Origin: Andalucia godoyi And28
Taxonomy: Eukaryota > Protista > Jakobida
Assembly (NCBI GenBank): GCA_009859145.1
Contig: VRVR01000047.1
Location: 181,093 to 245,092 of the forward strand
Direction: 5' to 3'
Length of the DNA: 64,000 nt
The stretch's first letter is position 1; the number at the start of each line of letters is the position of its first letter. Position numbers and translations under genes: made by a program. The notes under the pieces are model-generated. The model did no database searches, was not told the origin of the DNA, and worked only from the letters and a program-made list of their open reading frames with translations. Positions 3 to 51,501 of this stretch are shown one piece after another.

Positions 3-404
3 GTGTTGTGCATTGTTGCCATGGCAATTGAAGCGGTGCACGACGTGGAAGAGCTGATTAATGGATGGTATTTCATCATATATGCAGTTCATTTCATCCT
101 GCAAGCCGTCTGGATCTTCGACTGTGGTGCTCGAATCAGTTTGGTCTCATGGCAGATCCGAACGACGATTCTACGCGACATTGCAGCAAAGTTCGTCGTG
201 TTCCAGCCCGGCGAGTGCATCATCACCGTTTCCTCTTACATTGCGTACTTGCAGACTGCATATCGCGCATTCAATGTCCTTGGTGTCCCCATCACATACT
301 CTCTCGGCGCAAAAATCACGCAGGTTCTTGTCTTTTTCATCGGCCCACTCTTCATTGCTGCGTTCGTTCTTTACCGCTCTTCCAAAGGAGAAAACACCGC
401 TTAA
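3..404 (+). CDS. 3' part of a multi-pass membrane protein, probably gustatory receptor-like / 7TM ion channel (GRL/DUF3537-like); 5' end lies outside the window
   Basis: Hydrophobic helices; 'WIFDCGARIS' resembles the TM6 end and 'FNVLGVPITYSLGAKI' the TM7 motif of GRL/DUF3537 proteins, paralleling the ORFs at 5333 and 7280. Confidence 0.5.
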   Translation: MLCIVAMAIEAVHDVEELINGWYFIIYAVHFILQAVWIFDCGARISLVSWQIRTTILRDIAAKFVVFQPGECIITVSSYIAYLQTAYRAFNVLGVPITYSLGAKITQVLVFFIGPLFIAAFVLYRSSKGENTA

Positions 405-484
405 TGATGCCAGGATCCCATCAGTCGTACAGTCCAGCTTCGTTACAGTACTTTCGCCCTTTAGGTTTTACCGCTTTTTTTGCG

Positions 485-488
<4 letters not shown>

Positions 489-527
<39 letters not shown>
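489..527. repeat. (TA)n microsatellite
   Basis: Perfect TA run in an intergenic spacer. Confidence 0.97.
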
Positions 528-529
<2 letters not shown>

Positions 530-947
530 CGTCTTCTTTATTTTTTGACTAGTCTTTTTTGTGAAAACGTGTTTTATAAAACTATATATCGCTGTCCACG
601 GTATCATCACTTGGTTTCAAATGCTCCGAAAACGCCCTTTGGAGTCCTCCGATCGACCATCGAAGAAACCAAAGACACCGTCCTCACAACCCGTTCTCGA
701 TGATACGTTTCTGTCGTCGATTGGAAGAGACTCGTATTCTTCTTCTTCATTGTCGTTTTCGTATGGCTTCCCAGAATTCTTACTATTTTTTGTTTATTTA
801 AATTTCCAACAACAACAACAACAGAAGAAGAAAAAAAAAAAAAAAAACGAACACATAGTGTCATACAGTTGTGTGATGGTCGAGAATGTGGGTCTAATAT
901 TATGCAGAGGATCGAATGCGCTGGTTCGCTCGAGCTCGGCGAAGAGG

Positions 948-1911
948 ATGGGGACAGCAGTTTCTGAGCGAGAAGCACGATCGAACCGGCTTCCGAAGCG
1001 GAAGAAGGATAGGCTTCTGGAAGTTGACGTGTCGAAGGAAGAGACGCAGCGCGAGAAGAAACTTGCGAAGATCCAGGAGTTGAAAGACAAGGCGAGTCGC
1101 AGGGCCGATGTGCTGAAGATGCTCAAGGAGAATGCGGTCAATGTCGATCTGCTAGAAAAGATGAAGGAGGCTCATCGTCCACGAAATCACGACAAGGACC
1201 GAGAGTGGGACTTTGATGCCCTCGAGAAGGAAAAGGAGCAGGAGCAGGAGCAGGAGCAGGAATTGGAACAGGCAGCCGAAACACAAAGTAGGGAGTCGGC
1301 AGAACAAGGAGACAGACGACGAGAGCATGCAGTCTTGTCCCGAGCGCAGCGGAAGAAGCTTCGCAAACGCCAGCGGGTAGCGGAAGATGAGAACGGATCA
1401 GACAGCGATCGCAGTGTAGATTCCGAGGATGTCGACGCGCAGAATCGGAAGAGTAGGGGCGCTGAGCATGGCCGTCAGAAAGGGGTAGAATTAGAGTTCC
1501 AGCAGCAGGAGGAGGAGGAGGAGGAGATTATCCCATCGCAGGAATTGATTGGCAAGCTTGAAAAACTCAAACTGCAGTTCAAAGAGTGCGAATCAATGTT
1601 CTTCTGGACGGGATCGCTGACCGAGCGTCTGATGTCGTTTGTCAAGGGATTCATCACGGAGCTCGAAAAGAAGGACCTGCACTCCGAAGCCTCTTGGAAT
1701 CGAACTGTGTCAAGTATCAGGACGTTGATGGAGGAGGAAGCAAAGCGGTCGTGGTGGAATCCAAGATGCAAGAAAACTGTTCAGGGTTTTGTTGCGGCAC
1801 TCTCCACCGAGCAACCGCAGCCATTGGCAACTTCTTCCACACCGTCTTCTTCTGTGGAAACAGCCAAGGTGGATGCTGAACGAAATCTGTCGGCAGCAGA
1901 TGATAAGGACA

Positions 1912-1945
<34 letters not shown>

Positions 1946-4900
1946 GGATGAAGACAAGTCGCATGATTCTGCAGATGAGCCGTTTGAAGAGTACTTCCCT
2001 CCAATCAAGATTCCGTTGCCCGACATGGACAAGCCAGTGGAAGATGGCCCAAAACTGACTCTGCGAGACATTGTGCGAATTCATAGGTCTGCCGAGGTCG
2101 AGTTGCATCGTTCCTCTCTGCCTGCTTTAAGCGCGGAAGCCGATGTTCTTGAAGCAGTGGCAAACAACCCAATCATCCTTGTCTCTGGTTCCACGGGTTC
2201 CGGGAAGACCACGCAGATTCCTCAGATGCTGTATGAGCAAGGATACCAGCGATTTGGAAAGATTGGGGTCACTCAGCCCCGCCGAGTTGCAGCGACCTCG
2301 ATTGCGAGGCGTGTTGCTTTTGAAATGAATTTCGATCTTGGAAAAGAAGTCGGCTATGTTGTGCGTCATGATTCGAAAGCCTCTGACCAAGTCAGCATTC
2401 TGTTCATGACCGACGGAATCCTGCTTCGACAATTGCAGAAGGACCCGCTGTTGATGGAGTACTCGGTGATCATGATTGATGAAGCTCATGAACGGTCGGT
2501 TACGTCGGACATCCTGATTGGAGTCTTGTCGCGGATCGTCCATGTTCGTTGGACAATGCCCGAAAACAGGAAATTGCGCGTTATTCTCATGTCCGCTACA
2601 CTTCGCGTTGAGGAATTCCGAGACTCGTTGAAGCAACATTTGCCTCTTGTGGCCATTGAGAATCGCCAGTTCCCTGTCGAGGTCCATTTTGCCCGAGAAA
2701 CTCCAGATGATTACGTTCAGGCCGCGTTTGATCGAGTGCTGAGAATCCACGCAACGACCAAGCTAGAGGGTGGCGTATTGGTATTCATGACGGGTAGAGA
2801 GGAAGTCGAGCGGTTGTGTAAGATGTTGCATGACTGGGAATCCAATCGGGACGAAAAATTGAGGCAACTTGCACTGCGAAGAGCAAGAGAAAAGGAAGCT
2901 GAAGAAGCCGAGGAAGAGAAGAAGAATGGAGATGTGATTATCTTGCAGCCAGAAAGGTTTACGGAAGCAGACGCGACGGTGGAGCGGAACGAGTTCATGG
3001 CCGCACTCGACGTCTTGTTGCAGCGTAAGCAGTCCGAGGAATCGTTACTGCCACCCATGTCGTCGCACAATGACGCTAAAGGAGTGGGAAAGAAGACGAC
3101 GAAGAACAACAAAAGCAGCAACAGCAGCAGCAAGAGAGGCACAAAGGTCGAGACCGCATCTTCTTCTGCAGAGGAAGAAGAGGAGGAGAAGACATTTCTC
3201 CATATTCTGCCCTTGTTTGCGCTCATGGACATGGACAGGCAGAACCAAGTATTTGAACCAGCGCCATCTCCAAAACATCGACTGGTAGTGGTGGCGACGA
3301 ATGTTGCAGAGTCATCGCTCACAATTCCTGGAATTCGTTTCGTTGTTGATTCGGGACGACACAAGACGCGCGAGTACTCTGCAGCCACTGGAGTTGGATA
3401 CATGCGAAACACATGGATTGCACGCTCGAATTCCGATCAACGTGCAGGGCGTGCAGGGCGTGTGGGTCCTGGAGTTTGCTGGAGATTGTTTTCTTCTGCA
3501 GTGTTCGCAAACCACATGCCGCAGTGGGACGTCCCAGAACTTGCGAAGGCGCCGCTTGAGGGCGTGGTGTTACAGATTCTCTCCCTCGGAGTGCCATCTG
3601 TTCGGAAGTTCCCGTTCCTAACTGCGCCTGCCCCGTCCACTCTGGACCGAGCAATCGAGCTTCTGACCGTGCTGGGAGCGATTGTGGACGATACAGAAAC
3701 ACTGTCGCCGCTTGGACACTCGATCGCAAAACTTCCTGTACATCCTCGATATGGAAAGTTGCTTTTGCTCTCCAAAGCAAACGGGTTGCTGGAGTACGCG
3801 ATATCCCTTGTGGCTGCTCTGTCGGTTCGCGAAATCATTCCTTCGTTTGCAACTCTCACGGAAGAGCAAAAGCAAAAGATACTGCATCTTTCTCATCCAA
3901 AGTCGGATTTCATCACGTTTCTACGCATCATGGGCGCCGCGGAGTTCTCTCTAGACAAGGCAAGCTTTTGCAACATGTTTGGTGTTCTGCCAAAGCCGCT
4001 CAGCGAAGCCTTGAATTTGAAGCGACAGTTGCACATGATGTTTTTCAAGAAGGTTCCCGAGAAGAAGTTGCCTCCGCCGTCGCAAGAGGACCAGGATAAA
4101 TTGTTGACGTTGATTGCTTCTTGCTACCTTGATCGCGTCGCTCGTCGAGCCACATTGGAAGAGCTGAATGTGAAGAATCTGAAGCGGGAGTGGTTTTACT
4201 TCGCGATGGGATCGGACAAGCCGGTTCGGATCTACCGGGATTCAGGAGTCTCGCGACACGTAACAACGTCGTCTACTGTCCGTGAAGAAGACTGGCCGGA
4301 GCTGTTGATCTTTGACAGCATGGAGGACAAGGAGGTTCGACGTGGGTTTTCCCAAAATGAGTCTGCTGCAGTCGCGCCACAAGAGGGCAAAAAGACGATT
4401 TTGGACAAGAAGGATAAGCTCGACGTTGAGAATGACCATGATGATTACGCCGAGATGGACTCAGATGCGGAAAAGGAAACCAAGGGCCCCTCCGAGCTTG
4501 TTGAGAAGCATCGGTATATCCGAATGGTGTCGTGCATCACTCCCGATGTTCTCCTTCAGGTCGATTCCTCTGAGCGGTTCGTCAAACGTTCGAAGCCGCT
4601 TGAGACTCCGTGTCCATTCTACGATCCGGAAGAGGACAGAATCATGGCTCATTATCGCGTTTCGTACAATCGAGACGAGTTTGACTTGGGAATCTTTACT
4701 CTTGCAATGCCCTTCTCACTTGAAAGCATTCGCTGGATTGCACGCGGCTTTTTGGAGGGTTGTTTGTTTGAGGGGTTTCCGCGAAACGACCTGGACAAGA
4801 GAAAGACTTTCTTGTCAACGTCGCCGTCGCTTGCTACTCGTGGAAGTGTTCCGCATCCAAAGGCTGCGTTGTTGATCCAAGCCATCGGGCGCCGCAAGTT

Positions 4901-5261
4901 GACGAGTGCGAGATCGTTCATCGAAATGTGGCAGAAGGAACCGATGGCTCTCTGGAACGAGTATTCCGAATGGCTTGTCCCCGAACATAGAGTGTCTCCA
5001 AGTATGTCTGGATTCGCTTGGCCTCCAGTAGATGTCTCGCTCGACTTGGATGCATCTTTCAAGAGACGGTCCAAGACTCTGAAGAAGTCGCGTAAAGCGA
5101 AAGCGAAAACGTCGGCTTCGGCGTCGGAGGCGGGTGATGTCGAAGCTCGCGCGCGCCGTGTGTCACAGAGCCAGCGCCTTTTGGAGTTGGAGTTGACAGA
5201 CACAGTGGAGTGGCGGTTTCTTGGTGACGACGATGATTCGGAAGGCGACGCGTCCGACTGA
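948..5261 (+). CDS. DHX37: DEAH-box RNA helicase DHX37/Dhr1 (SSU processome)
   Basis: GSTGSGKTTQIPQ, TQPRRVAA, MTDGILL, DEAHERS, SATL, ATNVAESSLTIPG, QRAGRAGRVGPGVCWRLFSSAVF (Dhr1-type). ATG at 948 (MGTAVSEREARS) resembles the Dhr1 N-terminus. The ORF is open from 561 but runs through a poly-A/AT-rich stretch. Confidence 0.92.
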
Positions 5262-5332
5262 TTGCAGAGTTGACGGGGGACGGACCACGAGGTGGGTGGG
5301 GAGGAGCGGGGGGGACGACGGGACACGTTCGT

Positions 5333-6910
5333 CTAGTTACTGAGAAGCGTTCGTTCGAATAAGAACGAGAATATGGCCGTTGACATTCCGATCAGCTTGA
5401 GCATTGCGCGATACGTAACATCCATGCCCATGATCGATACCGGCTGACACTCATTTCGCAGTGTCGCAAAAAACGTGGAGAGCAACATCAAATCTGCAGA
5501 GCGCCTGGATGTGCCGTCCGAGTCTGAGGCTAAGACCGAGGCTGAGACCGATTTCGATGCTTGCAGCTGGCGCAGAGGGGTGTCGCCCATTTGGGACCGA
5601 CGTCTGGTCAGCTCGGACCATTCGATAACGGCCCTATGAAATTGCTTCTTGGGAACTTTGGAGGCCGACTTGCCGGTGTTCGCAACGCTGCTGATGGGCA
5701 CATAGAGTTCCAGCTGCAATTCGTCGACAACATGCCCCACTGTGATGTGGGACACAAGCCGTGCAAACCTTTTAGTTTGCTGCGAAGCTTCTGCAGCAGG
5801 TGAAACGCAGAGCAGCAACAAGACAAACATGGCCAATGCCATGCACGTCAGAAAGAGAGATCCCACTGACGATTCAAATAAAGAAGCTATTGCGCCGACC
5901 AAGAAGAAAAAGAACAAGAAGACAAGAGGAAACACAAAAGCCGTGAGCGATGCTGAGATTCCAAGGGCGAGAGCTTGCTGCTTGGCGAACAGATCCAGGA
6001 TTTGGGAAAGCGAGATTCTCGATGTCTGGCGCTCCGTCGAAACTGCGGAAGGATAAACTCCAGCACCATCCTGGTCCTCATCCACTCTCTCATTCGAACT
6101 GGCACGCGAGCGCACGGCCCAATAAAACAGCTCCTCAGTGACGTTCAACTGGAGCAGAACCATGATTTTGCACAGGTAGGCCACCGGAATCACTCCTATG
6201 AAGATCGAGACATACGGAATCGAGTAGAAGCATCCGTCTGACCACAGTTGCAACGAGCTTGCAGACTCTCCATATGTAATGAAATTGATGTACGCGTTCA
6301 ACCATGCTGCCGCCACACCAACACCTACCGCCACAAGCGATCTTCGAAGCACTGAACTGTGAAGCTGCTGCATTCGGCTCTTGTTGACGGAGGGAAACGT
6401 CGTGTGGATAATTGGGCCGACTCGCTCGTAGCACGACCATTGGTACATGACCAAGGCAACGAAAACCGAGAGCAAAATGAGCTCGACCAAGCTTCCGTAC
6501 ACTGCATACCCAGACTCGGACAACAAGTCCACAATCTTGACGGCTTCCACCATCCCAAACGAACACACAATCAACGAACGGATGCACAGTCGAAGCCAAC
6601 GAGGACACTCCGGCAACAGCGAGCACGCAAATCCGGTCAGCACAAGACTGTACAATGGAATTACGGGAAGGTCCACAATATCGTTCTCCAATTGCAGCTG
6701 CAGTCCGTCTGCTGCACTTCGCGCAGCATCCACCCCGCCTTGATCATTCTGTGCATGCTCGAACCGAAATGGCGGTTTCTCGATATGCGGGCCGCTCCCC
6801 CGTTGTCTTCTACCAGCATGCTTTCTGCGGCAAATACGAAATGCGAGGAAGGCAAGCATCCACAGCCCCACAAGCACCAGCTGCACGATCGGAATCACCA
6901 TGCTCAACAT
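5333..6910 (-). CDS. Gustatory receptor-like 7TM ion channel (GRL/7TMIC) family protein, paralog 1
   Basis: About 8 hydrophobic segments; 'LLLCVSPAAEASQQ' (TM6) and C-terminal 'VSIMGMDVTYRAMLKLIGMSTAIFSFLFE' (TM7); clear paralog of 7280-8932. Confidence 0.7.
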   Translation of the reverse strand: MLSMVIPIVQLVLVGLWMLAFLAFRICRRKHAGRRQRGSGPHIEKPPFRFEHAQNDQGGVDAARSAADGLQLQLENDIVDLPVIPLYSLVLTGFACSLLPECPRWLRLCIRSLIVCSFGMVEAVKIVDLLSESGYAVYGSLVELILLSVFVALVMYQWSCYERVGPIIHTTFPSVNKSRMQQLHSSVLRRSLVAVGVGVAAAWLNAYINFITYGESASSLQLWSDGCFYSIPYVSIFIGVIPVAYLCKIMVLLQLNVTEELFYWAVRSRASSNERVDEDQDGAGVYPSAVSTERQTSRISLSQILDLFAKQQALALGISASLTAFVFPLVFLFFFFLVGAIASLFESSVGSLFLTCMALAMFVLLLLCVSPAAEASQQTKRFARLVSHITVGHVVDELQLELYVPISSVANTGKSASKVPKKQFHRAVIEWSELTRRRSQMGDTPLRQLQASKSVSASVLASDSDGTSRRSADLMLLSTFFATLRNECQPVSIMGMDVTYRAMLKLIGMSTAIFSFLFERTLLSN

Positions 6911-7021
6911 CCCGGATCATACAGTGCTTCTGCTTGCCTCATCGACGAAGAACTGGGAAAGAACAGGAGAAAAAAAGAAGAATAATAAATGAATTTATAA
7001 ATAAATAAATTAATAAACACG

Positions 7022-7023
<2 letters not shown>

Positions 7024-7087
<64 letters not shown>
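7024..7087. repeat. Compound (CA)n(GA)n microsatellite
   Basis: Direct reading; lies between the two GRL paralogs. Confidence 0.97.
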
Positions 7088-7279
7088 CAAAGTGCGAGGG
7101 AACGGTTCAGACGACTCGGTTCGGAACGAGAATCGGGACGTTTCCCGCTCGCTTCCCGACAGCCTTTTGTTTCCTTTAAAAAATAAAGCTGTACGACGGA
7201 GGGGCTGCGTACGTGCGGTGCACAGAGGACATCACCGGTTACCGTAGGTGTGTCGTGCGGCTGGGATGCCGAGGAATGG

Positions 7280-8932
7280 CTAGACAAGAAGAAGGAGCCC
7301 GGCTTGGATGAGAAAGGAGAAAACCGCAAAGGCGGTTCCGGAGAGCTGGATGATGGACCTATGCGTGACGTCGAACCCGAGAATTTCGAGTGCCATTTGC
7401 TCTTCTCGAAGCGCCTCGAAAAAGATGCGCAGCTGATGCTCCTCCTCTGGGGTGCTGCAACTGCGCCTTTGCTCATTGCCGGTCCCCACTGCTGACGATG
7501 GTGAGGAGGAGGACGGTTGTTTTCGCGAGTGCTCAAAGAGAAAGAGAGTTTGTCGGACTTCGCTCCACTTGTGTACAATCTCATCAAACTGCGCAGGGAC
7601 ATCACCCTCTTGGGTTGCGCAGTGCTGGCGTTGATGCTTCTTTTGCGACGACGGATTTCGGACGGACGGAATATACATTTGCAACTGGGATTCCTCGTGA
7701 ATCTGGTTCAGCAGGACATGCGAAACAAGTCTTGCGAACCTTTTCATCTGCGTCGAAGCCTCGGCTGCGGGAAGAATGCAATAGAGGAAAGTTATAAACA
7801 CACACATTGCCAACACCACAATCAGCAGCGTCGACGGCGATTTCTCAAACACTGCAAACAGACTGAGTAGAATCAGAAAAATGACGAAAAATGCAAGAGG
7901 GAACACAAAGACGTTGAAGAAGCGAGACAAGTCATGGAGAAGCGACTGTTGTCGTTCGAACAGCGCGATTATATCACTCAGGGACGTCGGCATTCCCTCC
8001 TTCTTCTTCTCCAGCAACATAATCCTGTTGCTAACACCATCAGCACCACGAGCACCACGAGCACCACCATTGGACGCAGCTTTCGCGAAGGAGCGGGAAT
8101 TGTGTAGAGCCCAAAAGAAAAGTTCCTCGGTGATGTTGATCTGGAGCAGAAAGACGATTTTGCAGAGGTATGCGACGGGGATCATTGCGACAAAGATGAA
8201 TGTATAGGGAATGGGATAGAACAGCAACGAAGAGACAAAGACCAGCGTTGCGCGCCCATCATTCTCACGAAACGACAGATGCTGGTTTGAAAAAGAATTG
8301 ATGACTGCACCGAGTAAGCCGAGACCGAGGGCAAGAGCCGAGCGGATGGTCACTGCTGCGTGCAGTTCCCCGATCTTCGTGGTGTGGACGGATGGGAACA
8401 GCGTGTGGATCAGCGGCCCAACTTGTTCATAGCAGATCCATTGGTAGAAAAACATCAGCGAAAAGCCCAGCAGCACAATCGACTGCGCAACCAACGACGC
8501 AGACTGCACTGTCGACTCCGAGATTGCAACCAGCATGTTATTCACAAAAATGAGAAGAACCGTGCACACAATCATGCACCTCGTTCCATACCGCACGGTC
8601 ACGGTGCACTCGGGAAGAATCGAGCACATAAACCCGTTCAGCAGAAGCGCATACTGCGGAAGAACAGGCAGATCCACAATCAGCGACTGCAGCTCCGTCT
8701 CCAGCACCGACGAATCTGCTGCTGCCGTAGTCAAAGCCCTGCTCTCCGAGTCGAGCAGCGGCGACGCCATCAGCAGCTCGCGGCTCTGCAAAGACCACTG
8801 CGAGATCGTCTGCCGACGAGCTACGCGCCGGCTGTACACTACAGTCACCAAGCACATCAGCCATAGTCCCACAATCACAAGCTGCGCAATCGACGTCCCT
8901 ACTGACAACGCCGACTGGTCCAACTGCACCAT
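7280..8932 (-). CDS. Gustatory receptor-like 7TM ion channel (GRL/7TMIC) family protein, paralog 2
   Basis: 'FLYCILPAAEASTQ' (TM6) and 'LEILGFDVTHRSIIQLSGTAFAVFSFLIQ' (TM7a/b with terminal L-x-Q); shares QLVxVGLW, IVDLPVxPxYxLxLxGFxCSxLPEC and IPVAYLCKI with paralog 1. Confidence 0.72.
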   Translation of the reverse strand: MVQLDQSALSVGTSIAQLVIVGLWLMCLVTVVYSRRVARRQTISQWSLQSRELLMASPLLDSESRALTTAAADSSVLETELQSLIVDLPVLPQYALLLNGFMCSILPECTVTVRYGTRCMIVCTVLLIFVNNMLVAISESTVQSASLVAQSIVLLGFSLMFFYQWICYEQVGPLIHTLFPSVHTTKIGELHAAVTIRSALALGLGLLGAVINSFSNQHLSFRENDGRATLVFVSSLLFYPIPYTFIFVAMIPVAYLCKIVFLLQINITEELFFWALHNSRSFAKAASNGGARGARGADGVSNRIMLLEKKKEGMPTSLSDIIALFERQQSLLHDLSRFFNVFVFPLAFFVIFLILLSLFAVFEKSPSTLLIVVLAMCVFITFLYCILPAAEASTQMKRFARLVSHVLLNQIHEESQLQMYIPSVRNPSSQKKHQRQHCATQEGDVPAQFDEIVHKWSEVRQTLFLFEHSRKQPSSSSPSSAVGTGNEQRRSCSTPEEEHQLRIFFEALREEQMALEILGFDVTHRSIIQLSGTAFAVFSFLIQAGLLLLV

Positions 8933-9038: not shown

Positions 9039-9040
<2 letters not shown>

Positions 9041-9453
9041 TACAGCATCAACAAAGGACAGCAAAACCCAAATTAAAAAAACCGCGCGCAGTTGTCAAAT
9101 AGTAACCGCGTAGATAACATGATGAATCAATCCCGCAGCTTGTAGTACAGCAGGCAATGGGGTTTCTGCTAGGAGGGCGTGGCGCAGGTGCGTGGAGAAC
9201 GGAGGGAGAGAGGGTGGTTTCCTAGGTCGATCAGCTCGTACGGCGAGTCAGCGATTCAGAGTCGTGCAATCACCCGGAAGAATGACAAAGAATCAAGAGG
9301 GGGAAGAGAGGGTGCTTCATTCCCTCTTACGTCATCCCAAAGCCATTTGGTTTCCCTTTACAATAACATTGATGTTACAAGAAAAACAGCAATGAAAGAC
9401 AAACAAAGGATTAGAAAGATAGTACGACGAAGGAACAGGAAAGGAGTTACGCG

Positions 9454-11286
9454 ATGAAGTCGATGCAGGATGTGCTGCAACATCCAGTGTATCTGAGCTT
9501 GATCTTTTCGGGGCTTCACTACCGAGAATTGGCGTCGATCGCGCTGGTGTGCTCGAGCTGGAATTCCGCCGCGCGCACGGCGGTTCTTCGCGGGATTGCG
9601 CGGCGATGGGACTCAGTTTCATCGCGAGGGGACGAAGAATCGTCAAACTACAGCCATGCCTGTACCGGGTCCTATGCTGCTATCCGCGTCTGCGAGTTTG
9701 GGAGTGGGTATGACGACGAGCATGCGTACGAGTTGTGTGCATACGCAAGCGGCACCCATGCGTCTGGTCAGAGGCTCCCGCCGAGCATTCGGTCGCTGCT
9801 GCGCTCGTATACCTTGTTTGTCGGGGCTTCGAATGCACAGGGATCCGCCTCCACCGATTGCCGCGACGCTGATCATCCTGCTGCGCTGATGGAGGGTCTT
9901 ACCGCTCTGACGCGCTTACAGGTGCACGTCGTAGGAGCCGATGCGTCACAAGCCCGAATGCCTCCACTGTTCAACGTCTGTGCTGCGCTTTCCTGCAGCT
10001 GCCTGCGTGGGCTGAGGTCGCTCTGTGTTGCTCTGTCTGAGGACTGCTCGCCGGACTTGCGGTTATCGGACGCCATCCCTGCGCTGACCACGGTGCGACA
10101 GACGTGCTCGCAGCTCTCGAGCCTGACGCTTGCAGCACCTCAGTTGTCGCGACAGGATATTCTGCACATAGCAAGTGCTCCGCAATCGTTTCTGCTTTTG
10201 TCGTGCTTTCGCTTATCGTCCTCGAACACGTATTCTCTAGACAGCGACGACCCTGCTGACCATGCGGCGGTCTTGCAACTCGCGCGAATGATTTCTCGAA
10301 ACACCGGGTTCCAAAAGATTGCGTTTCACCAAATCGCGTTCACGAGAGATGCGATCCAGCTGCTTGCAGAATCGCATTTGCCGTTCCTTCGCTCGTTCGG
10401 GCTTACGGCAATGCACTGGAATGTGCAAAAGGCACAGGCGCTCGCTTGTTCGCGCTGGAGAACCATTGAGGAGCTGCACTTGACGGACGCTGCAGGGCTA
10501 TATGAAGACGGCCTGTCTGTCCTGTTTTCGTGCACAATGATCCGCCGTTTGCGAGTTCTTACGCTCTCCACGCGATTTTGGAACGTGGATCCGATGCTGT
10601 CTGCCGAATACGGACTTCCGACGGTGGACCACGCCAACGTGCACAGCTTGTATGCCCCGATGATGTCGTTTGGCGCACTCTCCGCGATCGATCTCTCTGG
10701 AAATGACTGGTTCTGCAGCACGGTCGAAGCGGTATCCGCTTCCACTCGGCTGTTCTCTACCCACGGCTTCGCCTCGAGAATCTCCAAACTCGGTATTGCG
10801 AATGTCGGCTTTTCTGCGCAGACCCTGGAGATTTTCCTGACCAACTGCTCATGGGACAACGTGCAACATCTCGATGTCTCTGAAAACGACAAGATGGGAG
10901 ACAGTGTGCTCGATATCCTTTCGTCCTGTCCGTTCCGCAAACACCTCGCTTCTCTGGAAATGCGTGGTTGCGGCGTTTCTTCCGCTGCCTTCCAGGCGTT
11001 CGTTGGCGTGAACAACCTTCCAAATCTGCGTATGCTCGACATTTCTGCGAATGACCTTGACTGCACAGGGTGCGCCGCACTTGCCCGCCACTCTCGCAAT
11101 TTCCCAAATTTGGCGTCACTGATAATGGCGTGCAGCTCCATCGGGGAGGCTGGTGCCTGGTGCTTGTGCGGTCTCAAGCAGTTGTCGTATTTGGACGTTT
11201 CCAGCAATGGTGTTCCGGCAAGCTTCCGAGACGCAGTGATGTCTTCGCCGACGATGCTGCCTCTCCTAGAAGTTGCCCTGATTTAA
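9454..11286 (+). CDS. F-box / leucine-rich repeat (RNI-like) protein
   Basis: N-terminal 'LSLIFSGLHYRELASIALVCSSWNSAA' F-box pattern; C-terminal LRRs (LSAIDLSGN, VQHLDVSEN, LRMLDISANDL, LSYLDVSSNGV). Confidence 0.85.
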   Translation: MKSMQDVLQHPVYLSLIFSGLHYRELASIALVCSSWNSAARTAVLRGIARRWDSVSSRGDEESSNYSHACTGSYAAIRVCEFGSGYDDEHAYELCAYASGTHASGQRLPPSIRSLLRSYTLFVGASNAQGSASTDCRDADHPAALMEGLTALTRLQVHVVGADASQARMPPLFNVCAALSCSCLRGLRSLCVALSEDCSPDLRLSDAIPALTTVRQTCSQLSSLTLAAPQLSRQDILHIASAPQSFLLLSCFRLSSSNTYSLDSDDPADHAAVLQLARMISRNTGFQKIAFHQIAFTRDAIQLLAESHLPFLRSFGLTAMHWNVQKAQALACSRWRTIEELHLTDAAGLYEDGLSVLFSCTMIRRLRVLTLSTRFWNVDPMLSAEYGLPTVDHANVHSLYAPMMSFGALSAIDLSGNDWFCSTVEAVSASTRLFSTHGFASRISKLGIANVGFSAQTLEIFLTNCSWDNVQHLDVSENDKMGDSVLDILSSCPFRKHLASLEMRGCGVSSAAFQAFVGVNNLPNLRMLDISANDLDCTGCAALARHSRNFPNLASLIMACSSIGEAGAWCLCGLKQLSYLDVSSNGVPASFRDAVMSSPTMLPLLEVALI

Positions 11287-18491: not shown

Positions 18492-20192
18492 CTAATGAGA
18501 CGCTTCCTCACGACAAGCTGCCTCAAACAGTGCTGCCTCGAATGCTGCTTCCTCGTCCACACCAGGCGTCGTTGTATGAGCTTCGTCGCAGAGCAGCGGT
18601 AGCACACAAGAAGGCGACTGACCTGGTGCGCCAACGTCCCTGAGGAGAGCATCCACAGAAGTATCATCTTGCTGGAGAATCACGTCCATGAACACGCCCT
18701 CGATTTCAAACGGCAATGGTCGAAAAGATGGAAGGATGGGCTTGGGAGACGAGCGGTAGTCTGCATACCGGCAGTCTGGATCGAAGCATTTCTGATAAAA
18801 CGTGCCGGATTTGAGGTCAATCAAGTAGTATTGTGTGTTGGACTTGTGTTGCCGACCGATGTTTTCACAATACTTGTTTCCAATTGTCGACACCGTCAGA
18901 ATCTGTGCGCTGCTATCTATGATTTGCCACTTTCGCATTTGCAGCGGTTCATGCCGTGTGTAGAAATCCGGGATGGGAAATCCTGCAAACGACTGCCATT
19001 CTTCAAACAGAGGGTGCAAGTTGGGCTGCGAAACCTTGGTGAAAAGTTGCTCGAGGAAGAAGCGAACGGAAGGAAACGGGAACGTCGTCAACGACCCTTC
19101 AGCGACAGGAGCGTCTCGTTCCAGGCTTGGGCAACCGGAACCATTTTGCCTCCACAAGCATGTTCCCAGCGGGTACTTCGACCCCGAGGACGATGCAGAT
19201 TTTGCGTCGAGTGTCCATTCCAGTATTCTTAGCGATGCTGGGTTGTACAAGCTCAGATCCGCTACAACAAGCGAGTTCTTAAACTTGCACTTTTCTGCAC
19301 TGATGCTGCCGAGCTCCGAGGACTTTCGATACAGAAACGGATTGTGTTTCGCAAACTTGCTTGATCGATACAGCCGAAAGCATCTGTTCCGCGTGTACAC
19401 GCCAACGTCGATGCACGGAACCTCCTTCTTGGACACATTACCATCGTCGTCGACATCTTTTTTCTTCACAAACAACACGTTGATTCTCGGATCGAATTCC
19501 CGGCGACCCTGGAGCTCATCCAGCATTGCAAAGACGAACTGTCCGACATGCAGATTGTTCTTCCACACAGCATCCGCGAACGGGACAACCAAGTGCTTGG
19601 AGAACTTGTGGCTCGTGCACGCGTCCAGGCACACGATTTTTGCCCGTGTGGACTCGAGGGTTGTGCATTGCACCGCCATCAGCCGCTGCGCGCCTTCCAA
19701 GAAAAGATCAATCAGAACCTGCACCATATGTTCGCCGTCACGGTCCGGACTGTCCTCCAGCATGTATTCCACATCAAAGTACAAGTGACACACGTCAGCC
19801 TCGCGGATAACTTCGTTGTAGCACACTGCACCGTCTCTTCCCGCAACAGCAGTGTTCCTTTCTTCCTCCAGCAATTCATAGTACCGATCGAAAAACGAGT
19901 CCACGGACGCAACAACGTACTTGCGACGTCCGGCACTCGACAGCTCATATGCCCACAGTCGAAGATGCGCACCTGCTTCGTGGTGCCGCGCGTACAAAAG
20001 CGCCTCTTCCTGCTTGCCAAACTCGGTCCACACAGCACGACCACTTAATCTCCTTTGTTTCGCGCGATCCTCAACTTTGCGCAGAAACTTCCTCCACGCA
20101 GGCTCGTCGTCCGCACCAATGCTATCGCTCTTCTTCCCGTAAAAGAAAGATTTCGACAAGGACTTTAGCTGCTTTCGACCTTGCGAATCCAT
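18492..20192 (-). CDS. PRIMPOL: DNA-directed primase/polymerase PrimPol
   Basis: AEP motifs 'HLYFDVEY', 'KFSKHLV', 'IDVGVYTRNRCFRLYRSSK'; UL52-type Zn finger 'YCENIGRQHKSN...QKCFDPDC'; acidic C-terminal tail. Start is uncertain (ATGs at about 20192-20231). Confidence 0.95.
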   Translation of the reverse strand: MDSQGRKQLKSLSKSFFYGKKSDSIGADDEPAWRKFLRKVEDRAKQRRLSGRAVWTEFGKQEEALLYARHHEAGAHLRLWAYELSSAGRRKYVVASVDSFFDRYYELLEEERNTAVAGRDGAVCYNEVIREADVCHLYFDVEYMLEDSPDRDGEHMVQVLIDLFLEGAQRLMAVQCTTLESTRAKIVCLDACTSHKFSKHLVVPFADAVWKNNLHVGQFVFAMLDELQGRREFDPRINVLFVKKKDVDDDGNVSKKEVPCIDVGVYTRNRCFRLYRSSKFAKHNPFLYRKSSELGSISAEKCKFKNSLVVADLSLYNPASLRILEWTLDAKSASSSGSKYPLGTCLWRQNGSGCPSLERDAPVAEGSLTTFPFPSVRFFLEQLFTKVSQPNLHPLFEEWQSFAGFPIPDFYTRHEPLQMRKWQIIDSSAQILTVSTIGNKYCENIGRQHKSNTQYYLIDLKSGTFYQKCFDPDCRYADYRSSPKPILPSFRPLPFEIEGVFMDVILQQDDTSVDALLRDVGAPGQSPSCVLPLLCDEAHTTTPGVDEEAAFEAALFEAACREEASH

Positions 20193-21090
20193 CGTCGTCG
20201 CATGCTCCATGCTCCAAACTGCCATACATCCGTCTGGTCTTGCCAAACGCGTCTATGCTCCCTCCCGCCCCCAGACTATGCCTCCTCCTTCTCCTCCTTC
20301 TCCTCCGAGTTTCGGCGCCGTTTCATCACGATACGTCTGCTGCATGAAAGATTACCAAAAGACGGGGCCTTTCCAACACGAAGAGCGACCCCCCCGATGC
20401 TGGGAAACAATGGTGATTGATGCTGAATAGCAGTAGTCAGTAAGATGTGCAGCAAGCTTGAAGTGTCGCTGCAGCATCACGTGTCATTGGTAATCACAGA
20501 TAGCTAATCTCTTCCGTTCCCGTGTTTCGTTTGTCTGCCAACGGACTCGGAGTGGGTTCCGTTGGGAAACCTGCAGCCCGTTTTGCAAGAGATGCGACGT
20601 CTTCCCCCCCAGCTCACCCTCACGATACTGGCGCCGCCGCCTCGTCAGTAATCATTGGAAGAACGTTATCCGTGGCGACACCTGTCGCGTGTTGGGGCAC
20701 GTACGGTGAGGGGGGTGCAGAAAAAACTTGGGTGAGAAGTGCACAATGCAGGCATTTTAGTGGTGCTCTTAAATGTGCATTTTACCGACGGGAGTTTGGT
20801 CTCTGGGATTTTTTCTTTTAATTTTACACTACTACAAGCTTCTATTTCTCTTTCTCCTTGAGATGCGGCGGAAGTAGGAGGGGTTTTCAAAGCATTTTGT
20901 TATTTTTTTTTCTCTCCCTCCTGCAAGAAAACATCTGAAGATAAGAACAAAACAGACATACACAGACAGGACAAACAAACAAGACCAGAGAGACCCGTTA
21001 CAAACGAAAGAAGAAGAAGAGGAAGAAGAAGGGAAAGCGAGGTAGTGCATGATCGAAAGAGATGCTCTGCAGAGAGATCCGCTGGTCAGA

Positions 21091-23344: not shown

Positions 23345-24178
23345 TTATTGAGCAGGTGACCACACGCCAGGCTCGACGACAATGCGTGCCTTTTTTGCAG
23401 ACGGTTTTCTCTTCTCTCTGTCCTCGCTGTCTCTTTCCGTCTTGTGGCTGTTGCTGTTGGAGTTGGAGTTGGAGTTGGCGGGAGTCGGGAGGTTGGTGCC
23501 GATTGCAAGCACTCGGTCGATTGATGCTGTGTCGGTGGCAGCAGCGATCGCACGCACGAGCTGATCGACACGCGATCGGATGACATCGACGCCCAATCTT
23601 GACTTCTTCTTCTCATTCTCATCGTCGCCGCTATTGTTCGACGGTGACTCCACACCCACATCGGCGCTCACACTGACGCCCACTTCATCCAAATGCAAGT
23701 GCAGGAACGCCGCAAACGACTCGTCCTGCATCGTGGATTGGACAAGCTTGACGATCCGACGTACTGCAGTCAAATATGCATTCCGAGCGCGCGCAAGCAC
23801 GAGCCGTCTGCTCTTTTCCGTCCACTCCTCCCGCAGTGCCGGCTTCCGACTCGATGCCACAGCGACTGCTGCCTGCACATGCGCATGTGGCAGCGGCAGC
23901 GGAAGCGACGGGACTGTGGGGGGCGGGACGGCGAGAATGTTCCTTGTGACGTAGAGCTCGAATCGGTCGAGGGCGGCGCTGAAGGAGGTCTCGAGATGGG
24001 CCTGGAGATGGGAGACCGAGGCAGAGAGCGCGACACGACGCCGCGGGTATGACTGCGCCAAATGAGACTCGAGAGACTCCAGACCCGACATCAGATAGTC
24101 CACACACACATTGACTACATCATCCAAAAACGACTGCGGTGTAAACTCGAAATACGCTGCAGACGACTCGACATCCAT
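23345..24178 (-). CDS. MIS12: Kinetochore protein Mis12
   Basis: 'YFEFTPQSFLDDVVN' and 'LETSFSAALDRFELYVTRNILAVP' are the two conserved Mis12 blocks. Confidence 0.85.
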   Translation of the reverse strand: MDVESSAAYFEFTPQSFLDDVVNVCVDYLMSGLESLESHLAQSYPRRRVALSASVSHLQAHLETSFSAALDRFELYVTRNILAVPPPTVPSLPLPLPHAHVQAAVAVASSRKPALREEWTEKSRRLVLARARNAYLTAVRRIVKLVQSTMQDESFAAFLHLHLDEVGVSVSADVGVESPSNNSGDDENEKKKSRLGVDVIRSRVDQLVRAIAAATDTASIDRVLAIGTNLPTPANSNSNSNSNSHKTERDSEDREKRKPSAKKARIVVEPGVWSPAQ

Positions 24179-24543
24179 TTTTTCCTTTCTTTCTTTCTCT
24201 TTTTTGATGTGTGTGTGTATGTTTTGTTTCTTGTATTCTCTGGTACGATTGCGTTGGATTCTTCGAGAAAGGAGAAAACACAATGCAAAGACAAGGAACG
24301 GAAGCGGGAAACAAGACGGAATCGACAAGCGGCGATTAACGGTGAGAATCGGACGGTAGCGAAAAGCTCGGAGGATAAAATACTGCACGCCTTCAATCCG
24401 AATCTTTTTTCCTGACTTTTATTGGGATCCGAGGAGTGCGTTGATTTGAAGAATTCAATAGGCATAAATCCGTATATGCATGTATGCATTCAGTTAGGAA
24501 TATACCAGCAGCGACAGTTTGGAAGAAGGATTGAAAGAAAAAG

Positions 24544-35392: not shown

Positions 35393-36282
35393 CTGCTTTG
35401 TGTAACAACGTTGAACATCAAAACAATACGATTTTCTTAGCGTAGTCAAGTCCAGAATCTCTTCAATCCTTCACTTCTTTATCTTTCTTTCTATTATCTT
35501 CTGTTTTTATTATTATTATTTCATTATTAATCGAACCCTCAAGCAGACAAGCCATCTCACGGCTCCAAAGAGGGATCTTCCCGCCAAACGCAAACCCGGT
35601 CATGCCCAATGATACCGAAGACCAAGAAAACTCGCGGCTGCGACGACCTTCTGATGCAAAGCAATCTGCATTGAAGAGTTTGTGCTCGTCCCCCAACCCC
35701 TCAAATAAAGAGCAAAAACACATGACTTAGCCGATGATCTACTGTATAATGATTCATGTTTTGGTGAGCGGCGATACGCCTACATTGTACACTAACCACG
35801 GATAATCATCGCTGATCACCCATAATCAATTCTGCAACCCAACAACATGCATAATGCAACGCGGTGGCGTATTCATATAGGGATTTCATGATCAAAAACG
35901 GGGCGAAACGAATCGGGCATCGTGTGACGGAGTTGCTTAAGATAGCAAACGCATGCGGCATGGCGCGTGACAGTGTTTTTGTTTTACGTGCGCTGTAGAT
36001 TGCTTCAGCATACCGCATCGCAATCAGTGGTAGCTGCCGGAGTACAGCTGTTATATCTTCTCTTGCAGCAGCATTCACATTGACATTGACGTTGACGTTT
36101 TTTAGATTGTCGGAAATTGTGGAAAGAGTAAAATTTCCGAAAGAAGACTTCTTTCCAGGACGATTCGGGGTTTCAAAGCCAGCAAAAAACACACAGATAG
36201 TGCTCAGCGATAGGCACGAACCGTGACAGTTGTATCGAATTGGTGCTTGTTGTGAACTGGGAAGCAGGGTTGATTCGCAAGA

Positions 36283-37371
36283 ATGTCCCCGTCGCCGAAG
36301 AACAAGCCGCAAACGTACATGAATTCCATGTCCTCTTCGCGATCGCCGCTGGTGTTTCCGACAACAAGCAACGCATTCCCCCAGTCGTTGGAAGAGTCGA
36401 TGCACCTTACATCTTCCTATATGGGTTCTGCACAGCAGGATGTGAGCAGACTGCACAATCTTTCTCTTGGCAGCAGCAGCCGGTTTTACCCCAAGCCGCG
36501 GGAGAGCGAGGTGTCTGGATCTGGTTCGCAACGGATGAAAATTACACCGCCTCGGCAGTTCGTTGCGCATCCTCTTCATTCGCCACGACGAATATCGCCG
36601 AGAAGTAAGGCTGGGTCTGAGCAGCTGGACGACAATGACCCTGCTCGTCGGGAGGATCTTTCTGCTGCAGAATATGCAGTGTACTATGCATCTCCCTTTA
36701 GAGCACAGTTTCATGCTCCGGCGGCGGCGACGAGCGCTTCGATTCCAACAAGTGGGCTGTCTTCGCATGCCAGAATTCGAGGAATTCCCGAAAGTGATTC
36801 TTTGCAGAACGTCTTTGAGACCCCGAGAACGTCTCGCCAGAGAGCCAGACCGAGAGAGTCGACATCGCTGTTGAAGATGGAAAAGCACGCGCTGCTTCAA
36901 AAGGCCTATGCCCCTCATCTCGTTCCGAAGCAGACAGAAGAAAGACGGTCCAGTACCGGCACTAGCGGCGGTGGCGGCGGCAGCAGCAGGGGCAGCGGAG
37001 TGTTTGGACTGCCTCCTGCTGGATCGCTGTCGGCTAGATCGGCTCGCGACACTTGTAGAATGTCGAAAAGCGGGAAAGACAGGAAGGGAGGGAAAACCAT
37101 CACTGGAAACGCGGAAGAAGCCCTGTGGCTTGACGAGTTTGTGGACGAAGAAAAGGCCCTTCCGAACTGGGCTCTGGAGTGGAATGCAAAACCGTCCACC
37201 ATCGACGCGATGAATGATCAGCTTCGACTGGGACTGCTCAGCGGGGGTGTAACTCGGGATCCTGTTCCCAGCCCCCGAATCATCAGTCCCGGAACCGGCA
37301 CGCCAAAGACTCCTCGACGAGGAGAGCGTGTCTTCTCCGTCGCAGGGACTCCACATTTTGGGCATCCGTAG
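36283..37371 (+). CDS. Ser/Pro/Arg-rich, probably disordered hypothetical protein (362 aa)
   Basis: ATG-initiated ORF with many SP/TP sites; the longer antisense ORF looks like its shadow. Confidence 0.6.
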   Translation: MSPSPKNKPQTYMNSMSSSRSPLVFPTTSNAFPQSLEESMHLTSSYMGSAQQDVSRLHNLSLGSSSRFYPKPRESEVSGSGSQRMKITPPRQFVAHPLHSPRRISPRSKAGSEQLDDNDPARREDLSAAEYAVYYASPFRAQFHAPAAATSASIPTSGLSSHARIRGIPESDSLQNVFETPRTSRQRARPRESTSLLKMEKHALLQKAYAPHLVPKQTEERRSSTGTSGGGGGSSRGSGVFGLPPAGSLSARSARDTCRMSKSGKDRKGGKTITGNAEEALWLDEFVDEEKALPNWALEWNAKPSTIDAMNDQLRLGLLSGGVTRDPVPSPRIISPGTGTPKTPRRGERVFSVAGTPHFGHP

Positions 37372-37586
37372 GTCACTCTGCGAGACTTCGCTCCACAATA
37401 ACAAAATACACGTAGCATATGAAATATCGTATTCGTGGATTGCAACGCGTTGTCTGTAGCAACGGCATCCTCATTGTCAACATCGCACGATCGCGATTGC
37501 TACTATTTTTGGTATTGTATTTATTTTTCTTATTTTAATTATTATGATATCACACTCGTGCTTGGGAGTGCACGACGGAGCGGCAT

Positions 37587-44465: not shown

Positions 44466-44566
44466 ATCAGGCCATCAACCCATCATCCCCGCCATTTCTT
44501 CTTGCTCGATTGTCCGAAGCATCGTCGGGAATTCTTCTTGTTTTGGACATTCGAGGAGCCGGTCAC

Positions 44567-44616
44567 CACTTGGACAAAACACTTGGACGAAACACTTGGA
44601 CAAAACACTTGGTCAA
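44567..44616 (+). repeat. 13-bp tandem repeat (CACTTGGACAAAA) x about 3.8
   Basis: Units at 44567, 44580 (one mismatch), 44593 and 44606 (partial); about 125 nt upstream of the giant Cys-rich gene. Confidence 0.93.
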
Positions 44617-44741
44617 TGCTGGTCCTTCTTCAGAAAGCCCATTGCTTTGCGCAATCTCGTTCACTTTACAGAGTGCACCACACCAGGTGTTTTCCCACAC
44701 GGATTCCAACATCAGTTCTCACAACGCCCTTATTCTCCATC

Positions 44742-51389: not shown

Positions 51390-51404
51390 TGCTCTGGTGC
51401 TCTG
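51381..51404 (+). repeat. 8-bp tandem triplication GTGCTCT(A/G) spanning the stop codon of the giant gene
   Basis: gtgctcta-gtgctctg-gtgctctg read directly. Confidence 0.85.
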
Positions 51405-51501
51405 ATGCGTTGGTGCCAGCCGGTTTCGTCTTACACCTCGAGAAGCGGCGCCGAATCGTGACGTATATGCAGCAAAACAACACTCAGTACCGTGATCTGG
51501 G

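Follow-up and report, generated by a model that had tools for sequence, protein, structure and literature searches.

Candidate gustatory-receptor-like 7TMIC proteins encoded by a gene pair of the jakobid Andalucia godoyi

The present analysis concerns a 64,000-nucleotide stretch of the Andalucia godoyi And28 genome (contig VRVR01000047.1, positions 181,093 to 245,092), referred to here in its entirety as the window, and in particular two adjacent genes near its start whose products resemble gustatory-receptor-like (GRL) members of the seven-transmembrane ion channel (7TMIC) superfamily. Four gene-like open reading frames (ORFs) lie within the first 9 kb of the window:

3..404, plus strand: 3′ end of a gene (133 codons), a membrane-protein ORF truncated by the window edge (the cut ORF)
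561..5261, plus strand: ORF of a DHX37/Dhr1-type DEAH RNA helicase gene, with the Pfam domains DEAD, Helicase_C, HA2_N, HA2_C and DHX37_C
5333..6910, minus strand: paralog 1, complete and intronless, encoding a GRL/7TMIC-like protein of 525 amino acids (aa) with eight transmembrane (TM) helices
7280..8932, minus strand: paralog 2, complete and intronless, encoding an eight-TM GRL/7TMIC-like protein of 550 aa

A gene pair with a predicted 7TMIC fold

The lengths of the two tandem paralogs are exactly those given in the original prediction. Each gene begins at the first possible ATG and continues in an uninterrupted reading frame, with 369 bp of (CT)n- and (GT)n-rich spacer between the two. Under a codon model derived from other genes of the window both score as coding in these frames, as does, more weakly, the cut ORF. 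The proteins align with each other at a BLASTP E-value of 3e-100 and 36% identity over 543 columns, which by sequence comparison makes them a true but old gene pair. The local expansion that had been proposed for this region thus comes down to just two old paralogs, and since the helicase gene (~4.7 kb) intervenes between them and the cut ORF, the supposed cluster spanning positions 3-8932 is not contiguous.

AlphaFold2 (AF2) models were built from a six-sequence alignment for paralog 2 and a seven-sequence alignment for paralog 1. The paralog 2 model has a mean predicted local distance difference test score (pLDDT) of 68.7 and a predicted template-modelling score (pTM) of 0.68, the paralog 1 model 71.2 and 0.70, with all five paralog 1 models in the range 65-71. 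In both cases the TM helices reach a pLDDT of 80-93, and the low-confidence stretches are confined to the linker behind the first helix, the TM4-TM5 loop and the long TM6-TM7 loop.

Foldseek comparison of these models with 350,542 PDB chains returned the insect gustatory and odorant receptors (Gr/Or) and essentially nothing else. The nine best matches of paralog 2 are Gr43a, AgamOR28, Gr64a, AaegOR10, BmGr9 and MhOr5, and insect Gr/Or chains account for 16 of its 21 best matches, with probabilities of up to 1.00 and target-normalised TM-scores of 0.47-0.57. The five best matches of paralog 1 are BmGr9, Gr43a and MhOr5 (probability 0.99-1.00, E 0.012-0.1, TM-score 0.43-0.52). Across both models the Gr/Or match probability is 0.8-1.0; for both paralogs, all other matches have a TM-score of 0.30 or below and a probability of 0.13 or below. 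The first 7TMIC structure, Orco, was released on 2018-08-22, later than the structures on which AlphaFold2 was trained; memorisation of the fold is therefore unlikely. Accepted unicellular GRLs align to Orco with TM-align scores of 0.47-0.74 (PMC9998090), and the TM-scores of the paralogs fall inside this tabulated range.

The architecture was read against the five fold features listed by Himmel, Moi and Benton 2023. In both models TM4, TM5 and TM6 are lengthened in the manner of the insect anchor domain (62/55, 46/43 and 40/42 residues in paralog 2/paralog 1, vs 28/28 for TM1). The outer loops measure 2-6 residues in the models, far shorter than the inner loops; counted between hydrophobic cores they comprise 6, 22-33 and 8-9 residues, and the inner loops 30-142. 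Lysine and arginine are distributed very unequally, with 35-39 in the predicted cytoplasmic loops vs 0-3 outside, and by the positive-inside rule the seven-helix core is predicted to be oriented N-in/C-out as in insect receptors. The C-terminal end is modelled in both proteins as a helix, a beta-hairpin and a second helix, i.e. as the split of TM7 into TM7a and TM7b. The principal elements, with IL denoting intracellular loops, are located as follows:

8837..8893, minus strand: extra N-terminal TM helix of paralog 2 (residues 14-32), hydropathy 2.37, signal-anchor-like and followed by an RR..RR cluster
6845..6901, minus strand: extra N-terminal TM helix of paralog 1 (residues 4-22), counterpart of the paralog 2 helix
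7898..7984, minus strand: end of IL2 and cytoplasmic start of TM5 in paralog 2 (residues 317-345), SLSDIIALFERQQSLLHDLSRFFNVFVFP, the strongest profile-profile match to published GRLs
7769..7780, minus strand: C-I-L-P, the start of C-x-x-P-A-A-E-A-S in paralog 2 (residues 385-388), placed by alignments at the cytoplasmic end of TM6
7454..7693, minus strand: IL3 insertion between TM6 and TM7a of paralog 2 (residues 414-493), cytoplasmic, pLDDT below 50 at 414-418 and 420-493
7403..7450, minus strand: TM7a of paralog 2 (residues 495-510), a helix by DSSP, predicted cytoplasmic, aligning to TM7a of the GRL profile
7364..7387, minus strand: beta-hairpin of paralog 2 (residues 516-523, EILGFDVT), DSSP strands at 516-517 and 520-521
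7286..7363, minus strand: TM7b of paralog 2 (residues 524-549), putative pore helix, a helix by DSSP with pLDDT 87-93, Q543 near its outer end
5414..5512, minus strand: TM7a (467-487) and beta-hairpin (IMGMDVTY) of paralog 1 (residues 467-499) in the AF2 model, hairpin element at 492-497
5339..5413, minus strand: TM7b of paralog 1 (residues 500-524) in the AF2 model, E519 at the Q position

The added N-terminal helix lies outside the canonical 7TMIC core, and owing to it the protein N-terminus should face outward. In the paralog 2 model it is part of a helix spanning residues 6-53 with a pLDDT of about 88; R35, in the arginine cluster that follows, is invariant in all six family members, and the linker behind the helix is cytoplasmic by the distribution of lysine and arginine. 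TM6 of paralog 2 is a helix from 368 to 407, and the loop between TM6 and TM7a holds 60-90 low-confidence residues in the paralogs. The IL3 insertion of paralog 2 is gapped and poorly conserved in the alignment and, judging from the model, probably disordered.

Taken together, the Foldseek matches, the predicted split of TM7, the long TM4-6, the predicted topology and the profile similarity to GRLs described below support the assignment of paralogs 1 and 2 to the GRL/7TMIC superfamily as proteins of a unicellular eukaryote. The TM7a/TM7b split on which the original prediction staked its case is predicted, and the best matches are not the unrelated transporters that it had held up as the contrary outcome.

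Relatives, profile similarity and motifs

A HMMER scan of 1.84 billion representative proteins, carried out in full with a profile of the two paralogs, returned a family of just six members. Besides the two window proteins, both of which are recorded with EukProt as their source, it comprises P0003, an unambiguous relative from a metagenome (E 1.8e-51), and three matches that are weak yet collinear (E 9e-6 to 6e-4), two of which are the A. godoyi proteins ANDGO_05491 and ANDGO_01374. There are only two to four paralogs per genome, unlike the expanded repertoires of chemoreceptors, and kinetoplastid proteins are absent from the six members that this exhaustive search found. Word-indexed protein searches, with paralog 2 or with the six-member alignment as query, gave the query itself or nothing and are uninformative for this family; a conserved-peptide scan of metagenome contigs produced 113 pattern matches, none of which was confirmed. 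Exact look-ups on contigs, made for the window proteins and for the two A. godoyi proteins, returned no record.

P0003, the closest relative of the window paralogs (497 aa, 29% identity), is encoded at 1576-3069 of L001, a 6-kb JGI metagenome contig from sample 3300042934, on which none of the adjoining genes is informative. A near-identical second copy, P0007, is found on another contig, and the two suggest that an uncultured relative of the source organism is present in that sample.

To relate the family to known proteins, 11 published unicellular GRLs (Benton et al. 2020 supplement) were aligned with MAFFT and compared by hhalign with the profile of the six members. The comparison scored 60.0 (probability 91.9%, P 7e-7). 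Its high-confidence core runs from the last part of IL2 into the beginning of TM5 (positions 290-343 of the A2 hidden Markov model, about residues 310-363 of paralog 2). Relaxing the posterior threshold gives a collinear alignment of 368 columns, in which TM5, TM7a, the hairpin and TM7b of the paralog family lie opposite their counterparts in the GRLs. Within this region S317, I321, L324, Q328, Q329, L331, S336, F342 and P345 (paralog 2 numbering) are invariant in the A3 alignment. Reversed-profile controls score 20-23, and 60 block-permuted GRL profiles in which hydrophobic blocks were kept have a mean of 18.1, a standard deviation (sd) of 2.9 and a maximum of 25.7, which places the observed score ~14 sd above this null. 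The two paralogs and P0003 alone still score 50.4 against the GRLs, and dropping the chytrid, Protostelium, Vitrella or Thecamonas GRL1-3 group leaves scores of 44-55; the Thecamonas GRL4-6 group, compared on its own, gives a probability of 63% (P 7e-5). By these controls the profile link to GRLs is real, but it is chiefly carried by one published subgroup, and at the level of sequence profiles it is the Thecamonas trahens GRL4-6 group that appears nearest among published relatives.

The short motifs quoted in the original prediction fare unevenly. A C-terminal string of the type LG..VT(Y/H) does occur in all three proteins, as LGFDVTH in paralog 2 (518-524), MGMDVTY in paralog 1 (494-500, opening with M rather than L) and LGVPITY in the cut ORF (93-99). 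In the models of the paralogs, however, it lies in the hairpin between TM7a and TM7b, ahead of TM7b, and is not the canonical motif of gustatory receptors. The regular expression [LM]G[FMV].[VI]T[YH] has no further occurrence in 88,408 residues of six-frame window ORFs; it was derived post hoc from the same three sequences, so that its uniqueness is no test. Similar hairpin strings occur in published GRLs, e.g. VLGISITY in PfunGRL1 and IFGVAITS in TtraGRL5. The canonical motif, (T/S)Yhhhhh(Q/K/E)(F/L/M), is found in the C-terminal half of TM7 and has been called 'diagnostic, but not definitive' (PMC7746228). Equating T(Y/H) with the canonical 'TY' was considered and rejected; it lies ~13-14 residues upstream of the canonical position, inside the predicted hairpin.

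The second motif, 'C..AA' at the end of TM6, needs correcting to C-x-x-P-A-A-E-A-S, which both paralogs carry (C385 and P388-S393 in paralog 2). It is absent from the cut ORF, where no more than 'DCGAR' is present. FSFLIQ is not the end of paralog 2 as had been stated: its C-terminus reads ...FSFLIQAGLLLLV, with AGLLLLV continuing past that point. In BmGr9 and MhOr5 a glutamine swings into the pore at opening and is needed for agonist-evoked flux (PMC11100771). The register of the C-terminal helices suggests that Q543 and E519 may occupy the equivalent of this gating position. All five full-length members keep Q or E in this column, with Q in the three others beside Q543 and E519.

Possible function, rival readings and the rest of the window

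In the predicted architecture an extra TM helix, whose N-terminal end faces outward, leads into a disordered cytoplasmic linker and a short re-entrant-like helix, followed by an N-in/C-out core of seven helices with very short outer loops. TM4, TM5 and TM6 reach into the cytoplasm in the likeness of the insect anchor domain, with a disordered IL2 and an unusually long IL3, and TM7 consists of a cytoplasmic TM7a, the LG..VT beta-hairpin and a membrane-embedded TM7b that ends 6-7 residues before the C-terminus. The most likely mechanism, drawn by analogy from the insect Ors and Grs, is that four subunits, identical or not, assemble into a cation channel whose pore would be lined by the four TM7b helices and which would be held together by TM7a and the extensions of TM4-6; a pocket formed by TM1-6 in each subunit would couple a small ligand, or some other stimulus, to the movement of TM7b, with Q543/E519 in place of the gating glutamine. 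In favour of a channel, conservation within the family is strongest where TM5 starts, where TM6 ends and in TM7a/hairpin/TM7b, the parts that build the anchor and pore of the insect receptors. Tetramer formation, channel activity, ligand gating and a sensory role are all inferred from this analogy.

A serious rival, possible though short of probable, accepts the 7TMIC fold and dispenses with ligand-gated chemosensing, the proteins being instead constitutive channels, mechanically or voltage-modulated channels, scaffolds or organelle membrane proteins. The long, low-confidence IL2 and IL3, if disordered in the cytoplasm, would serve regulation or protein docking, and the scarcity of paralogs (merely two to four per genome) departs from chemoreceptor repertoires. 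In Grs the glutamine is followed by a hydrophobic gate residue (F444 of BmGr9), a position that is unconserved in the family, with A, R, V, Y or A, and the superfamily papers know of no function for unicellular, plant (DUF3537) or PHTF-type 7TMICs. Against such a role stands the fact that the most conserved parts, and those shared with GRLs, are the very ones that make the insect anchor and pore, and that Q or E is retained at the gating-glutamine position.

A second rival concerns the extent of the locus rather than the nature of the pair. The original prediction had counted the cut ORF as a third, partial member of the family, and a true three-gene cluster would require it to be a third, far more divergent 7TMIC separated from the other two by a flanked helicase gene. 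The cut ORF is coding-like, and its end, in which a TM helix is followed by ~50 residues, NVLGVPITY, a further TM helix and an 8-residue tail, matches the layout of TM6, TM7a, hairpin and TM7b. In every target tried, hhalign places its best local match at the TM7a-hairpin region. The score of 24.5 against Thecamonas GRL4-6 was reached by none of 80 local shuffles and that against PfunGRL1 by one of 80; the whole GRL profile, at nine of 80, gave no significant match, and against the paralog family 17 of 80 shuffles reached the observed score. Four targets were tried, and the best result needs discounting accordingly, so that the match to some GRLs is suggestive only. In direct comparison with the paralogs the cut ORF shows no significant similarity (BLASTP E 2.9, hmmsearch E 1.7, hhalign E 0.21), it sits past the helicase gene and on the other strand from the paralogs, just 133 residues of it are available, and a word-indexed protein search found no homologs. 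Its membership of the family as claimed is hence not borne out, and a divergent three-gene cluster is possible though less likely than not. All three forward frames are open over ~340 bases around 65-400 on the plus strand (ORFs 3-404, 61-552 and 65-703), and only the frame starting at base 3 scores as coding.

It is important to point out that several observations weigh against the assignment of the paralogs themselves to the superfamily, or against a receptor-like role. None of the six family members matches Pfam 7tm_7, 7tm_6, Trehalose_recp or DUF3537, even at an E-value of 10, and the 7tm_7/DUF3537 check by which the original prediction was to be verified thus yielded zero matches. A PDB sequence search with the family profile retrieved no Gr or Or chain and only chance matches to G-protein-coupled receptors and a picornavirus capsid (E 0.05 or higher). 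Foldseek E-values are weak (0.012-1), TM-scores of ~0.5 are borderline and root-mean-square deviations are large; the models rest on only 6-7 aligned sequences, and four of the five paralog 2 models are of lower confidence (45-59). Seven core helices plus the added N-terminal hydrophobic helix make eight. When Thecamonas GRL4-6 are removed from the GRL profile, the score drops to 30.4 (P 0.007) and the signal moves to TM7. Of the canonical TM7 motif the paralogs retain just the Q/K/E residue (Q543, E519). Where T, Y and F/L/M would be expected, paralog 2 has A/V/A and paralog 1 has A/I/R, in a register set by the helix end and not by structural alignment. Finally, no function or channel activity has been demonstrated for unicellular 7TMICs in PMC7746228, PMC9998090 or 10.1101/2023.08.30.555482.

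Convergence or artefact, with the paralogs an unrelated, lineage-specific eight-TM family (e.g. a transporter or structural membrane protein) whose shallow-alignment models share a generic helical-bundle similarity with receptors, could draw on Foldseek E-values never below 0.01 at a TM-score of ~0.5 and an alignment depth of 6-7 sequences, on the negative Pfam and PDB sequence searches, on an hhalign signal that leans on one GRL subgroup, and on the statement by the authors of the 7TMIC papers that convergence cannot be excluded for some groups, yet it is quite improbable in view of two separate models that retrieve one fold family among all the chains searched with nothing else above a TM-score of 0.30, a split TM7 with hairpin in both, a collinear alignment whose hhalign score of 60 far exceeds the block-permuted null, and AlphaFold2 training that preceded the release of Orco and makes a memorised fold unlikely.

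The explanation that we consider likely, taken as a whole, is that the two paralogs belong to a branch of the 7TMIC (Or/Gr/GRL/DUF3537) superfamily that is very small and restricted to a lineage.

The surroundings of the gene pair agree with the published description of the A. godoyi genome, which is ~20 Mb in size with mostly intronless genes, neighbours that are often oppositely oriented and intergenic spacers of 44-691 nt, with a mean of 217 (PMC7050145). Long uninterrupted ORFs switch strands along the window, with spacers of a few hundred bases and ~52% G+C. The mechanically defined helicase ORF opens with GTG, and the true start is probably a downstream ATG past the (CAA)n/(A)n tract near 810-850. 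Long microsatellites at 487-536, 810-850, 7025-7090 and ~9040-9075, composed of (TA)n, (CAA)n/(A)n, (CT)n(GT)n and (CA)n, respectively, stand out in the spacers against an otherwise very compact genome. Such spacers had pointed to a trypanosomatid, a reading that was rejected: alternation between strands rules out the unidirectional gene arrays of that group, and the paralogs lack the repeat domain of kinetoplastid GRL1.

Further along, a sharp island of 69-74% G+C occupies positions 45000-51500 of a window that is otherwise at about 50%. It coincides with an ORF of 2295 codons (44502-51389, plus strand) made of Cys-rich 'C..G.Y/F...C..CP.G' repeats, with a match to Pfam Ephrin_rec_like (E 1.5e-26) and a signal-peptide-like start near codon 81. 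Amino-acid composition, gene conversion among the repeats and foreign origin are candidate causes of the bias, and because of the high G+C long spurious ORFs run across the island on the opposite strand. At 18492-20246 (minus strand) a 584-aa ORF encodes a Herpes_UL52/UL70 primase domain (E 7e-11), which is characteristic of eukaryotic primase-polymerases of the PrimPol type. Two ORFs overlap at 35806-37404 (minus strand) and 36283-37371 (plus strand); neither has a Pfam match, and the codon model gives +0.149 to the plus-strand ORF and -0.061 (non-coding) to the longer minus-strand one. Between 9454 and 40226 there are many large ORFs that lack a Pfam domain (1058, 1013, 1322, 827, 879, 565, 494 and 444 aa). 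An F-box/LRR protein is encoded at 9454-11286 and Mis12 at 23345-24388; further along follow an MFS transporter, DUF1264 and DUF2608 proteins, an equilibrative nucleoside transporter, a small methyltransferase and a 1539-aa protein with an alpha-amylase domain. Scanning the window for Rfam families and tRNAs returned no match and thus no RNA-based hint at the organism.

Comparison with known systems

The history of the superfamily to which insect smell and taste receptors belong has been rebuilt, at its deepest levels, almost wholly from structure predictions, because the sequences are too dissimilar. Insect Gr/Or proteins (BmGr9, Gr43a, Gr64a, MhOr5 and Orco) are the best and essentially the sole structural matches of the paralogs, with which they have in common the long TM4-6, the split TM7, short outer loops, a core that in the paralogs is predicted to be N-in/C-out, a C-terminus just past the pore helix and Q or E at the gating-glutamine position. 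The paralogs differ from them in the lack of any Pfam match, an identity of 9-14%, the loss of T, Y and F/L from TYhhhhhQF, the added N-terminal TM helix and the long disordered IL3; ligand gating has been demonstrated in the insect proteins.

By sequence profile, the likeness is to the unicellular GRLs (PMC7746228), and especially to Thecamonas trahens GRL4-6, with a probability of 92% for the set of 11 and 63% for GRL4-6. TM5 and the TM7a/hairpin/TM7b region are collinear, a 'G..(I/V)T' hairpin string precedes TM7b, and the TM7 motif is weak on both sides (1-3 of four positions in GRLs, one of four in the paralogs); intronless genes and small paralog families are further common traits. Unlike the GRLs, the paralogs have the extra N-terminal TM helix and a longer IL3, and with an identity of ~11% there is no similarity at the level of BLAST or HMMER. 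They also come from another supergroup, Discoba/Jakobida, vs Apusozoa, Amoebozoa, chytrids and chromerids for the GRLs.

A long IL3 is a trait of all DUF3537 proteins (PMC7746228). These plant and algal Class-A members resemble the paralogs in this loop, in an unrecognisable TM7 motif and in having no function assigned; the paralogs lack a PF12056 match, and the comparison is drawn from published traits and the Pfam model. PHTF-like Class-B 7TMICs have the core fold in common with the paralogs. Class-B is defined by a long IL1 between TM2 and TM3, which in both paralog models has ~7 residues, their long loops being IL2 and IL3. Kinetoplastid GRL1 proteins (Kineto7TMICs) likewise possess the 7TMIC core fold and show no sequence similarity to other 7TMICs. 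They carry a large N-terminal cytoplasmic repeat domain with MORN repeats (PMC9998090), in place of which the paralogs, devoid of MORN or any other Pfam domain, have an N-terminal TM helix. The paralogs hence belong neither to the animal Gr/GRL Pfam family nor to DUF3537, the PHTF-like class or kinetoplastid GRL1.

The Discoba 7TMICs discussed so far are kinetoplastid proteins only, branching near prokaryotic ones (Benton & Himmel 2023, PMC9998090; Himmel et al. 2023), and no literature linking Andalucia or jakobids to 7TMICs or gustatory receptors was found in a survey that did not extend to the full hit lists of the published screen. A bolder and, in our estimate, unlikely proposal holds that the paralogs represent a jakobid-specific, eight-TM, Class-A-like branch, the first non-kinetoplastid members from Discoba, and serve a free-living, bacterivorous flagellate as working sensory cation channels, to which the N-terminal helix and the long IL3 would be lineage-specific regulatory additions. 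If this were true, the Gr/DUF3537-type lineage would predate the divergence of Discoba or would have been transferred into jakobids, and the published model of a Discoba with only early-branching 'Kineto7TMICs' would be revised. A family from a jakobid that measurably resembles apusozoan GRLs at the profile level would supply a further piece of evidence at a deep and much-debated point of the eukaryote tree and would help to date the split of the two eukaryotic 7TMIC classes. The small, nearly intron-free genome of A. godoyi offers short intronless genes that are easily cloned for a first functional study of a 7TMIC from outside the animals. With thousands of 7TMICs from unicellular organisms on record and a superfamily known to span all of life, the finding is an incremental one; what is added here is a new lineage with two structural peculiarities, an extra N-terminal helix and a long IL3.

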